Positions 21,901 to 39,900 of a stretch of 64,000 bases of DNA are shown here, piece by piece (within the stretch, counting starts at the first letter, position 1; every line of letters starts with the position of its first letter). The stretch covers positions 8,661,122-8,725,121 of the forward strand of contig NC_134030.1 of the NCBI RefSeq assembly GCF_964204645.1, given 5' to 3'. The notes beneath the pieces were generated by a model, which was not told where the DNA came from, made no database searches, and was given only the letters and a program-made list of their open reading frames with translations. Both the position numbers and the translations under genes were made by a program. Origin of the DNA: Tubulanus polymorphus. Taxonomy: Eukaryota > Animalia > Nemertea.

Positions 21901-24900
21901 AAGTATTTCTAATTGGAATGTGATTGAAACTGATTCAGGCGTAAAATTATCATTCAGTTGAAAATTTGTCATTCTTATTGCAGGGCTCATTGTATTCTGT
22001 CAATACAAACCACGAGATAATGGATTCGTCGACGGAACTGTCACAGCAATCCGAACAGCTGCAAAAGGCAGAGACACTAACAGAACAGCACCAACAACCA
22101 CTCCGATCGAGCACTGAAAGTCCTGGGATTAAATCTCATGGAGTTCAAGATAGTAAAATGGGACAGAATCAATCGGTTGACCATGGCTCTGAGCCAGAGA
22201 ATACCTTTAATGAATCGGATATCAATTCTTCAGAAAATCAACTTGGAAAAGGAATAAAAACCGATAAGGATTTATCAACTAGTGAACAGATACCAAGTGC
22301 AAATGGAAATAAGACTATCAATGAAGATGATAACATGAATCACCCTGGTGATTCAAATGGGCCAATGCAAGATGCTTCTGGTAAGAAAGTTGAAACATCT
22401 AATGCCAGTGTTGTGAAAAAGACTGTTCAATTTGGACAGAAAGATGAAGCCACTGATAATGCATCAAGTCTGGCTGCATCTCGATGGAAGTCGGCAGCTT
22501 CAAAAATATCTGCCGAAAAATCTCCGTCTGGAAGCACGAGTAGTTTAAACCGGGCAATTTCTACTGAGCACAAACCTCCGAGTTTAATTGATCGTATAAT
22601 GATGTTGTTCCGGCGCAAACGAATCGATGGTAAAATCTTGGAAGAATATATCGAAAAAGGTGAAATACCCGACGATGATGAGCTGAAAGCTGCATACATT
22701 GAGGCTGGTTATATCGATCCGGAAACAGGAACATTCACTGCTGATGCCAAGCAACGAGTGACTGAAGATCGTGTGGCTGCTCAACTTGAACTTGAAACAG
22801 AACAACTTGCAGCTAAAAGGGAAAATCTTAAACGTATGAAATCAAGATCGCAAAGCCAAGCTCAGGGAGAAGGAGAAAGTAAAGGTATTTTAGGTCGTTT
22901 CATTAGTCTCTTCAGAGGAAAGAGAGTTGAAGGAAAGGTTATCTCGGGACCAGAATTGAATGAAAATGGAGGTGAGGATAGAAATGATACAATTGCAGCA
23001 GCATCAGCAATGAAAGATGCTGACGAGAAACGTGAGAAAAGGAAAATGTGGGAGGAAAAGCTCCATCAATTGTCAACTGATTCAAAGATTGAAGAAGAAA
23101 CTAATTCCAGTGAGCAAGAGGAACACATTAGATTATTGGAGCATGGGGATCAAGCTGAGGATCAAATTATGATGGCTGACAATAATAATATGCTTCCGGA
23201 AAAAGATGACAAAGTAACTGAAAGAGATTCTGATAACACGCCATTATTAGAAACACAGGAATCGCATGATGAACATAGCAATGTTGATCTTAAAGGTGAC
23301 GATTTAGTTCAGCCAAAAAAATCAATACAAGCAATTCAAGAGGAACCACATCAAGAACTATCTTCAATACAATCCACAATGTCAGATTGGTTTAAAGTCT
23401 CTGTTTTAGAGGATATCAAACGGAAAAAATCATTAAGTGCATGTAGTGATGATTCATCACAAGATAATGATATGATGCACCAGATTGAGGATGAGTTTGA
23501 AAAAACTAAAAGACGCAGTAGCGTAAGGAGGCGGAGCAGTGCAAAAGCACCAAGAAAGCAACGTCCATCAATTGATGATATTGTTAAAGTGGTCAGTAAT
23601 AAAGAAGCTACAGAAAGAATAACTAATGAAATGCATGTTAAAGGTCCAGATGATATTAAGTTACTTGACAAACCCTACAATTCAACTGATGCCATTATAA
23701 ATGAAGAGAAATCAGAAATTTATGAAACTCGTCCTGTTGTTCTTTCATCTACTGATGCTACTGCCATCATGTCAGTTGGCGTAAATTGTATTGTTAAGAC
23801 AGCTTCAGAAAACGATCTAAATGAAAAAGAGCTTGAAAATACAAATGCCCCATCTCAGTTGGATAAACAAGAAGAATTGGCACCCATAAAACCCAAAATT
23901 GAAAAAGGATCAAGGCTTGGCACTTTCAGAACTTGGGCAAAAGGTCTCGGACAGCAGCTTACACAGGACTTGCTGGAGGATCATCAAGACCATAGAAGCC
24001 GGGACCTAGAAAATGATTGGCAGTTTAACACAGCTGATTTTGGGGGTGATCTGAACTTCAAGAATCCATTTCACAGGCTGGCATCAAGGTTCAATAACAA
24101 AGGCAAAAGCTTTGGAGAATTGGAAAACGTTTTAGCTCAAGGAGATGTGCCACAGGATCCAGAGCTCCGATTCGCGTTGATAGAGGCAGGGTATATCAAC
24201 CCTGAAACAAATAATTTTGTTTCCAATGCCTTAGAGAAGTTCCATGAAGACAAATCTAGAGCTGAAATTGAAGAAACTCAAAACGATATTTTAGATATGA
24301 GTAATAATCAGGATGGGCCTAAATTTGAACTTAATAATTGGGTGAGAGAAGTTGGACAAAAATCTTCTCAAGATCTAATCAAGGATCACAGGGACCAACA
24401 AAATAGGGACCTAGAAAGTGACTGGGAAAGTCGGCCAGCTGATGATTTCGAACTAACTTACCCATTCAAAAGGCTTATGAACTTGTTCAAGCGTAAAGGC
24501 GTCAGTGACAAAGATGTTGAACAATACATGACTAATGATGAAGTTCCCGATGATCCAGAAATCCGAGAAGCTCTTATCGAGGCAGGATATGTGGACCCTG
24601 TCACTATCACATTTAGACCTGAAGCTTTAGAGCAGTTCTTAAAAGATAAAGATGAAGCTGAAATCGAAGACACGGTGACAGGTGGATTAATGAATGAACC
24701 TATTACTCCGGAAAGGGAACAAACAGTTGAATCTGGAGTGAAAGATCCTACTGATTTGACAAGAGATTCAATGAAACCTGAAGATGACCGACCTAATGTT
24801 GAGGGTAAACCAAGTGTCCTTCAGAGGATACTGAATATGATTAGACGCAAAGGAATGAATGAAAAAGACATTGAAAAGGCAATTGCAAATAATGATGTCC

Positions 24901-36900: not shown

Positions 36901-39900
36901 TTAAATCAGATGCACTTGACAAGTTCATGGAACACAAATCTGTTGCCGAACAGCAAGAAAAATTGGAACAGACACCTCTTGAGGAAATCACACCTGAGAT
37001 AAGTGATGATGTAAAATCTGGTTTCTATGATAATAGGAATACCCAAAAAGATGATATGCCTATCGATGCAGATATGTGCCCGAGTAATGAAGGTACTGAG
37101 AAATCACCAAGATTTGGTAAATTAGGAGATTGGCCAATGGATGTTAGTCGAAAACTCTCTCAAGATCTACTAGAAGATCACAGTGACCAAAGTAATAGGG
37201 ACCTAGATAATGACTGGGCAAGTCGGCCTGCTGACTTTGGTGATTTCGAACTTACAAATCCATTCAAAAGGCTTATGAACTTGTTCAGGCGTAAAGGCAT
37301 CACCGACCAAGATATTGAACAGTACATGAATAATGGTGAAGTTCCCGATGATCCTGAAATCCAAGAAGCTCTTATTGAGGCAGGATATATTGACCCTGTA
37401 ACTATTGCATATAAACCTGATGCTCTAGAACAGTTCCTACAAGATAAAGAAGCGGCAGTTGATAAAAAATTGAAGGATGCATCAATGAATGAACCTATTG
37501 CTCCAGAAAGGGAACACATAGTAGAATCCAGAGAACCTTTCGATATGACAAAAGATACAATGAAACCTGAAGATGACAGACCTGATGCTGAGGCTGAATC
37601 AAGTGTCCCTCAGAGGATACTGAATATGTTTAGCAGCAAAGGGATGAATGAAAATGAAATTGAAAAGTCAATTGGAAATAATGATGTACCTGACGACCCT
37701 GAGCTTAGAGATGCACTTATTGAGGCTGGTTATATTGATCCAGTAATGAATACATTTAGACTGGATACCCTCGATATTTTCAAGGAAGAGTTGCAGGAGG
37801 ATCCGTCCTATGGAATACAATGTGAAATGACAGACAGGGTCAACTCTTGGCCTCGAGATTTCTATAGTGAATTACCAGAAGGAAAAGATATTCGACTTTT
37901 ATTAGGCTTACAATCTGATGATCCACTCGGTGATATAACCATTACCACAACAAGTGCATTAATGCTAAGTCCTACAGGAAGTTGTGATGAAATGGAAGAG
38001 GTTGGTCCTGTCACTGCTGGAATAGAAGAAGCAGTAAATAGAGAAACAATGAAAGATGCAGAAAGGAAATTTGAAATGATTGAGTCCACTGATTATACAA
38101 AATGTAAAATAAATCCTGAAGATGACAAACCTTATATTGAAGCTAAACCAAGTGTCTTACAGAGGATACTGAATATTTTACAACACAAAGGCATGGATGA
38201 TGAAGAAATTGAAAAGGTGATTGCATGCAATGATGTGCCTGACGATACTGTGCTGATTGATGCACTGATTGAGGCTGGATATTTTGACCCAGTAACAAAT
38301 AAATTTAGATCAAATGCATTGGAGTATTTCAAAGAAGACAAATCTGTTGCCGAACAGCAAGAAAAATTGGAAAAAACACCTCTTGTGGAAATCACACCTG
38401 AGATCAGCGATGATGTAAAAGCTGGTTTCTATGATGTTGAGAATGCTCATCAAGGTTACATGTCCATTGATGGGGATGTGAGGCCATGTGATGAATGCAC
38501 AGAGGAATCACCCAGATATGTTGGTAGAAAGCTCTCTCAAGATCTACTAAAAGACTGCAGTGACCTACAAAATAGGGACCTAGAAAATGACTGGGAAAGT
38601 CGGTCTGCTTATTTTGGGGATTTTGAACTTACAAACTTATTCAAAAGGCTTATGAACTTGTTCAAGCTTAAAGGCATCTGCACTTATGACGTTGAACAAT
38701 ACATAAATAGTGATGACGTTCCTGATGACCCAGAAATTCGAGATGCTCTTATCAAGGCAGGATATGTTGACCCAGTAACCCTTGCATTTAAACCGAATGC
38801 TCTAGAACAGTTTCTACAAGATAAAGAAGTAGCAGTAAATGAAGAAACATTGAAAGTTCCATCAATTAATGAACGTATTGCTCCAGAAAGTGAAGAAATG
38901 GCGGAGGCTGCATTGATCAATTCTACTGATTTGACAAAAGATTCAATAAAACCTGAAAATGATAGACCTGATATTAAGGGTAAACGAAGTCTCCTTCAGT
39001 TTATACTGAATATGTTTAGACACAAGGGAATGAATGAAAAAGACATTGAAAAGACAATTGCAGATAATGACATCCCTGACGACCTTGAGCTTAGAGATGC
39101 ACTTATAGCGGCTGGTTATATTGATCCAGTAATGCATAGATTTAGACCAGATGCACTTGATATTTTCAAGGAAGAGTTACGGGAGGATCCATCCTATGGA
39201 ATTCATTGTGAAATGACAGCTAGGGTTGAACCTTGGCCTTCGTCTAGTGCTGACGAAGGAAAAAATATTCAACTTTTATTAGGCTTACAATCTGTTAAAC
39301 CACTTGGCGATATAATGATAACAACAACTAGTGCATTAATGCTTGACCCTTCAGAAAATCATGATGAAATGGAAGGAGTTGGTCCTGTAACTACTGGAAA
39401 CGAAGAAGTGTATAAGATAACAGAGGAAGATACTGAAATTAAATCTGAAATGATGGATTCCACTGATTTGACAAAAGATTACATAAAACCTGAAGATGGC
39501 GGTTCTGATATTGGGACTAAACCAAGCATCATCTTAAAAATACTGAATATTTTTAGATGCAAGGGTATTGATGATAAAGAAATTGAAAACACAATTGCTC
39601 GCGGCAATGTGCCTGATGATCCTGAACTTAGAGATGCACTAATTGAGGCTGGATATATTGACCCAATTATGAATAGATTTAGATCAGATGCACTCGAGAA
39701 TTTCAAAGACGATAAATCTGTTGCTGAGCAGCGAGAAATACTGGAACAAAGTCTTATTGAGGAAATCACACCAGAGATCAGTAATGATGTAAGATCTGGA
39801 TTCTATGATGTTGCTCCACAAGCTAGCAATTTGCCCATCGATAGAGATTGTCACCCTGATGAAGAATTCACAGCCAAATCACCCAGATGTTATGAGCCAG

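Follow-up and report, generated by a model that had tools for sequence, protein, structure and literature searches.

A giant open reading frame (ORF) in the nemertean Tubulanus polymorphus encodes exactly 38 copies of an unrecognised module of ~62 amino acids, and lies wholly within one AGPS intron, in the same orientation as the host gene. It was found in a 64,000-nucleotide stretch of contig NC_134030.1 (positions 8,661,122 to 8,725,121, hereafter the window, to which all coordinates refer). The module cores are under purifying selection and have no relatives detectable in the collections that we searched, and the modules are predicted to be folded and the linkers between them disordered. 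We propose, with a probability of roughly 0.42, that the ORF is an independent nested gene with a single giant coding exon, whose product would act as a multivalent tether built of folded modules. That it is a real protein-coding gene of some kind is very probable.

The open reading frame and its setting

The frame remains open for 23.5 kb and corresponds to a predicted giant coding exon, whose product, counted from the first ATG, would have 7,817 amino acids and a mass of ~888 kDa. Among 200 shuffles of the ORF the longest stop-free run was 209 codons, and its length is therefore not due to chance. AGPS encodes alkyl-dihydroxyacetone phosphate synthase, a flavin adenine dinucleotide (FAD) oxidase of ether-lipid synthesis. 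Its exons were detected from 10674 to 13944, and then at 49163-49320 and 49760-49941; the whole ORF sits in the intron between these two groups. The features of the locus, all on the + strand, are as follows.

10674-49941, +: AGPS gene (603 amino acids in the source annotation)
13945-49162, +: AGPS intron hosting the ORF, GT-AG, 35.2 kb, with flanking exons that join in frame
21945-45473, +: stop-free single frame, 7,842 codons plus TAA, with no internal intron needed
21960-21983, +: candidate splice acceptor predicted from sequence, a pyrimidine tract followed by TTGCAG
22020-22022, +: first ATG, in strong context (A at -3, G at +4)
22158-22175, +: second ATG, in equally good context, with the peptide MGQNQS

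The candidate acceptor would place the start of the exon at 21984, in frame and 36 nucleotides upstream of the first ATG. Its score of 8.7 compares with 4.3-10.8 for the AGPS acceptors of the training set, and puts it within the top 0.5% of the AG dinucleotides of the intron. MGQNQS is an N-myristoylation-type motif, relevant only if the second methionine is the protein start. The highest 19-residue hydropathy in the ORF protein is 1.39, so there is no transmembrane-grade segment; no signal-peptide-like N-terminus was seen by inspection, and basic patches are present near the N-terminus. We found no terminal repeats flanking the ORF, and no tRNA or Rfam match.

Annotation was checked through record OZ123231.1 (GCA_964204645.2), which is identical to window positions 42499-63749. 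In this stretch, which covers the last 3 kb of the ORF, only AGPS (603 amino acids) and ERI1 are listed. The giant ORF appears to be unannotated, though nested or very long products might be missing from a listing of this kind.

Copy number and arrangement of the modules

The first-pass annotation, drawn up from the nucleotide sequence, described a ~60-amino-acid module repeated about 38 times. We scanned for it with a sequence motif and with a profile hidden Markov model (HMM), which was built from 15 copies and run against the six frames of the whole window. Both scans find 38 modules, all on the + strand and all in the one ORF, with HMM domain scores of 93-123 bits; the next match scores -3.9 bits. 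The module alignment has 67 columns and is gap-free; positions with E, P, D, A, G and P are invariant, and the consensus agrees with the one proposed earlier. The division into 28 copies in a young array and eight older ones was likewise borne out, with the same positions in both scans, and the helix-only copy reported near 22884 is present. Two further copies, at 22572 and 24054, had been described as solitary; the one at 24054 proved instead to be a diverged A-type module that retains its upstream conserved segment. The elements of the protein are listed below in window order, with one example for each part of the young unit.

22572-22772, +: most diverged module, 36-47% identical to the rest
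22884-22925, +: helix-only partial copy of helix 1 of the first module
23910-24254, +: old A-type element, comprising a third-helix variant, the conserved segment and the module at 24054-24254
24327-36269, +: young array, 14 units of 864 nucleotides (288 amino acids), 28 modules
25179-25223, +: example of the third amphipathic helix, ending in the basophilic kinase site RKLS and modelled with low confidence
25314-25514, +: example of module A
25668-25868, +: example of module B, 53% identical to A, with saturated synonymous sites
36270-39900, +: older units, eight modules (three A-type, five B-type) at 36387-39716
39900-44600, +: acidic, probably disordered region of ~1,600 amino acids, net charge -0.13 per residue
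44601-45473, +: C-terminal tail, near-neutral, in which basophilic kinase-type sites cluster

Each young unit comprises, in order, a third helix, the conserved segment, module A, a neutral linker, module B and a second linker, so that A and B modules alternate at spacings of 118 and 170 amino acids between 24450 and 36236. Within module A, helix 1 is followed by a KG turn, helix 2, a VPDDPE loop, helix 3, a GYxDP hairpin and helix 4. The tail contains five basophilic kinase-type sites where 0.39 would be expected, for a pattern that was picked after inspection.

The ORF also carries repeats of other kinds. An unrelated motif occurs in four copies near 37935, 39312, 40563 and 40857 (window ~37850-40900, +). 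It consists of a short hydrophobic strand, a loop and a D-I/V-x-I-T-T/F-T strand, and two of the four copies lie within a larger duplicated linker. The acidic region also contains a 56-amino-acid tandem duplication (41769-42103, +; 88% DNA identity) and a duplicated segment of 29 amino acids with kinase-type sites (40687-41103, +).

Evidence for a folded domain

AlphaFold models of the module, built from 15 paralogues, reach a predicted local distance difference test (pLDDT) score of 85, with all five models at 83-85. The modelled structure has helices at residues 5-16, 20-28, 36-45 and 59-66, and its GY motif is followed by a hairpin of two strands. For the 288-amino-acid unit, the model consists of two confident beads joined by linkers of pLDDT <50, and the predicted template modelling score (pTM) of 0.29 corresponds to no fixed geometry between the beads. 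The beads-on-a-string layout suggested by the first-pass annotation is thus reproduced by the model.

Substitution patterns agree with the presence of a domain. The ratio of nonsynonymous to synonymous substitution rates (dN/dS) for the core, in four comparable units, is 0.30 [0.14-0.60] in A and 0.23 [0.11-0.41] in B. Predicted disorder together with an unconstrained core had been named beforehand as grounds for rejecting the small folded domain that was suspected; we find a folded model, and core dN/dS values of 0.23-0.31 across the analysis. The companion proposal, that the linkers drift while the core is conserved, applies fully to the A-B linker (0.95 [0.57-1.72]) and partly to the linker from B to the next unit (0.50). 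It fails for the segment of ~40 amino acids before module A, whose dN/dS is 0.25; modelled with low confidence, this segment may be a linear binding element. We consider it likely that the module folds autonomously, and it may represent a new small fold. It is small enough for nuclear magnetic resonance or crystallography, and natural variants spanning ~36% to 100% identity mark its core. The module is a concrete candidate for a folded animal domain not yet described.

Duplication history

Modules A and B share 53% of their amino acids and have saturated synonymous sites. A tree separates A-type from B-type modules. The copy at 24054 tends towards A and that at 22572 is assigned to neither type, though these deep placements are weakly supported. 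Three older units that were aligned with a young unit show 80-90% DNA identity to it, and their insertions and deletions, of 3 or 6 nucleotides, preserve the frame. The 12 complete internal young units differ pairwise by 1-28 nucleotides, two pairs by only 1-2, and none are identical; many variants change amino acids, and there is no stop or frameshift across the 12 kb of the array. Differences between units fall in mosaic blocks, as expected of unequal crossing-over and conversion. A duplication history that leads from a single module to an A/B pair, to old units and to a young, homogenised array is legible within one exon.

Searches for relatives

The module had been flagged as unrecognised, and every search leaves it so. 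In Pfam nothing scored above the gathering threshold for single modules, the array or the unique regions; low E-values for the whole protein are sums of weak matches, with no single stretch passing. NCBIfam gave no match, and the best match among PDB sequences (E 0.029) is a partial one to ribosomal L14e. Foldseek, which had been suggested as a check, found nothing better than E 0.88 in the PDB for the modelled module; the modelled unit gave no credible PDB match either, and the search of the viral structures in BFVD was negative. The profile search, likewise suggested, was run with HMMER on 1.84 billion representative proteins and gave three weak matches only, with no credible relative among them. 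Two are armadillo-like repeat proteins for which alignment is limited to the ALxxAGxxDP stretch. The third, P0001 (L008:69-3791, Logan SRR23004078), shares only the GYIDPxTxxF hairpin, with 11.4 bits for its best single stretch and an hhalign probability of 41%, and was rejected as a relative. P0001 is itself an unannotated protein of 1,240 amino acids with ~12 copies of its own ~35-amino-acid repeat, which centres on a G-[HY]-I-D-P hairpin, has no Pfam match and constitutes an undescribed repeat.

Word searches found no long homologue of the N-terminal modules among proteins of 4,300-13,700 amino acids, and no homologue of the C-terminal tail among proteins of about 1,700-5,300 amino acids. 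Matches in metagenome and genome contigs (10-17 bits) were chance hits selected by the pattern, in unrelated bacterial genes, and viral contigs gave no match. We found nothing on this gene in the published literature. Since the gene seems to have been missed by annotation here, orthologues elsewhere may have been missed as well, and gaps in annotation may account in part for the absence of relatives from protein databases.

The basic helices

Every module is net acidic, and its helix 1 is basic (+2 to +5) with a strong hydrophobic moment. Helix 1 and the third helix are the main strongly amphipathic basic windows of the ORF protein. In 18-residue windows, helix 1 (of both A and B) and the third helix have a lipid-binding index D of 1.6-2.1, above the threshold of 0.68. 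This HeliQuest-type index (formula from PMC3189734) is driven by charge and also flags basic stretches that are not amphipathic. For helix 1, dN/dS is uninformative, as there are too few sites.

The basic helices had been likened to membrane-binding or calmodulin-binding elements. Their index values are compatible with this, and the helix-only copy at 22884 keeps the idea of membrane binding alive; as free elements, both helices now look weaker candidates. In the model, helix 1 belongs to the confident domain (pLDDT 80-87) and continues into the helix-KG-helix turn; it is probably part of the fold, as its first helix, and not a free membrane helix. Because it lies in that domain and leads to a near-invariant KG turn, its hydrophobic face is probably buried. 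The third helix is modelled at pLDDT 49-58. Although it had been assigned to each unit and is intact in 13 young units, a proline interrupts it in one older unit, and two others have lost it.

Comparison with known systems

AHNAK and AHNAK2 are cytoplasmic proteins of >600 kDa in which unique ends flank a central tandem array, and AHNAK2 has a giant exon of about 17 kb (PMC10682155). The ORF resembles them in its predicted giant exon, cytoplasmic-type product and tandem array. It differs in its period (288 amino acids with two predicted alpha+beta beads, versus AHNAK units of 128 or 165 amino acids), in its nested position inside the intron of another gene and in having no PDZ domain in Pfam scans of its segments, which a small upstream coding exon could have escaped. 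Neither the long-protein word search nor the HMMER search matched AHNAK. The giant ankyrins, such as Drosophila Ank2-L/XL and vertebrate giant AnkB/AnkG, also use very large exons, which encode lineage-specific tails that organise the cytoskeleton (PMC6703079). The ORF has no ankyrin repeat, ZU5, spectrin-binding or death domain, however, and the surrounding exons belong to AGPS, CDK and ERI1 genes. The likeness in gene design to AHNAK and giant ankyrins that had been pointed out is therefore sound for the giant exon, and is an analogy only.

AKAP12 (gravin) is an acidic, mostly disordered chain with basic membrane-targeting segments, myristoylation and kinase sites (PMC7670535). The ORF product is likewise acidic, with possible N-myristoylation, kinase sites and basic segments, but it is far larger, has no Pfam match to WSK (WxSxK), and its basic helices belong to folded repeats. 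Helices that resemble protein kinase A (PKA) RII-binding helices occur at 41253-41310 and ~43300-43370 (+), the first of which fits the consensus; the C-terminal region has two consensus matches, compared with 1.6 expected by chance. No IQ match to Pfam was found among the modules and ORF segments scanned.

Plakin arrays, such as that of epiplakin, consist of near-identical units in tandem, encoded by one giant ORF in a single exon, and the plakin hairpin, G-x-[IV]-D-P-x-T followed by a helix, is also present in our module. Even so, none of 15 modules matched Pfam Plectin at E up to 1, and no plakin domain is among the Foldseek and PDB matches listed. The helix-KG-helix turn, and the helix followed by a beta-hairpin, recall Pex14_N, RecX and winged helices. 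These matches are sub-threshold (best single-module E 0.11-0.21), and the modules are net acidic, unlike DNA-binding winged helices. The Plectin-repeat, Pex14_N and AKAP readings are not supported. By sequence the ORF groups with none of AHNAK, the giant ankyrins and AKAP12; the design of a giant-exon repeat scaffold is a known one, and the module from which this one is built is unrecognised.

Proposed function and alternatives

We suggest that the ORF is an independent gene nested in the AGPS intron, with transcripts entering the giant exon from a small upstream non-coding exon or from a promoter of its own. Most same-strand nested genes in Drosophila have a single exon (PMC3814207), in keeping with such an arrangement. 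An ancestral alpha+beta module of ~62 amino acids would have duplicated long ago to give types A and B, and the A-B pair would then have been amplified by unequal crossing-over or gene conversion into 14 near-identical units. In the resulting cytoplasmic protein of ~890 kDa, each module would fold alone, with the Arg/Lys face of helix 1 either open to the solvent or packed against the acidic VPDDPE loop. The partner that the modules might bind would itself be repeated; an anionic surface is the likeliest candidate, either a membrane face or a polymer of the cytoskeleton. The acidic disordered linkers would set the spacing. Basic N-terminal segments could anchor the protein and basophilic kinase sites could regulate it, and as a tether or spacer it could extend to a contour length of up to about 2 micrometres. 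This cytoplasmic tether or spacer role is a tentative assignment. We are more doubtful of a bolder version, in which one ribbon-worm lineage has produced a new small fold and binding-domain family and amplified it into a molecular ruler on the scale of titin or AHNAK, its gene hidden in the AGPS intron and overlooked by annotation. If that were true, unit number would set distance or elasticity, for example in an extensible body wall, proboscis or sperm. Whichever version applies, the locus illustrates how giant repeat scaffolds can arise independently from new parts. It also suggests that annotation can overlook a 23-kb coding exon when a host intron contains it in the same orientation.

Several observations weigh against our proposal. 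No gene is listed over the last 3 kb of the ORF, and the giant protein, with either start, is absent from a set of 15 billion proteins. The gene is known from the genomic sequence of one species; neither the HMMER nor the word searches found an orthologue, and conservation is measured between paralogues that are not independent and possibly converted. AlphaFold alignments were shallow (15 paralogues for the module, eight for the unit), and no test pointed to a binding partner. The index values of the basic helices, and the survival of the helix-only copy at 22884, would also be explained if these helices, about three per unit, were free membrane-binding or calmodulin-binding elements switched by phosphorylation, as in AKAP12 or MARCKS, with the cores serving as spacers or as docking sites that hide them. 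MGQNQS at the second methionine and the RKLS that ends the third helix would suit such a protein. We nevertheless find this unlikely, given that helix 1 lies in a confidently modelled domain and leads into a near-invariant KG turn of the kind seen in ordinary helical bundles, that the third helix decays in three older units, and that a charge-driven index stands beside the missing WSK and IQ matches. It is also improbable, on present evidence, that the ORF encodes a lineage-restricted structural or recognition protein of the germ line or gametes, with repeats homogenised by concerted evolution. Same-strand nested genes in Drosophila are narrowly expressed, and 58% peak in testis (PMC3814207), a statistic that need not transfer to nemerteans. 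An orphan gene with mosaic, homogenised repeats would fit this picture, and narrow expression would explain the missing gene call, but the absence of a transmembrane-grade segment and of a signal-peptide-like N-terminus argues against a surface receptor.

Length itself might be functionless, if only a few ancestral modules matter and the array expanded to 14 units recently and in frame, as a nearly neutral change that was tolerated. The close similarity of the young units, their many amino-acid-altering differences and the neutral evolution of the A-B linker are what such an expansion would leave. All eight older modules are nonetheless intact and constrained after 10-20% DNA divergence, which argues for lasting selection on many copies, and the young array is free of stops and frameshifts; we give this explanation little weight. 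The ORF could also belong to a multi-exon gene, AGPS or another, as its giant alternative terminal exon. It shares the AGPS strand and has a good in-frame acceptor at 21984; some upstream AGPS donors are in phase 0, and skipping two exons would create an in-frame fusion. Such a fusion would cut off the end of the catalytic domain, however, and the adjacent donor is in phase 2, so that splicing it to the giant-exon acceptor leads to a stop after 11 further codons. The longest recorded AGPS product has 603 amino acids, and no convincing coding exon was seen in 13945-21983, where small exons could have escaped detection. An AGPS isoform is accordingly very unlikely. Least credible of all are an error of assembly and the insertion of a transposon or of viral DNA, although near-identical tandem units can be miscounted and the gene is unannotated and without relatives. 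No two of the compared units are identical, which argues against an artefact, and old, diverged and selected copies flank the array; the ORF has no terminal repeats, no domain from a transposon or a virus passed the threshold, and neither a viral fold nor a viral locus matched.

Other features of the window

When the AGPS exon ending at 13944 is joined to the giant exon, the resulting TAA stop overlaps the first ATG of the ORF (TAATG, 22018-22022). This stop-start overlap is probably due to chance. Upstream of the ORF in the AGPS intron, at 17589-17806, are nested, imperfect inverted repeats with arms of 48 and 43 nucleotides, possibly a decayed element resembling a miniature inverted-repeat transposable element (MITE).

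AGPS is flanked by two other genes. A multi-exon gene for a CDK4/6-like protein kinase (5651-8774, -), with Pkinase matches on two exons, is arranged head-to-head with it. Tail-to-tail with AGPS lies an ERI1-type gene for a SAP and exonuclease protein (52499-53803, -), which is a single open frame. Its closest relative is in the nemertean Lineus longissimus (46% identity); with the human protein, the 52% identity is confined to the core. The Lineus longissimus ERI1 gene occupies 2,040 nucleotides for 384 amino acids and hence contains introns, so intron loss or a retrocopy is possible for the intronless gene in the window. The Lineus longissimus gene has different neighbours. Finally, a non-coding tandem array at 60973-62352 consists of 5.7 copies with a period of 243 bp and 89% matches.

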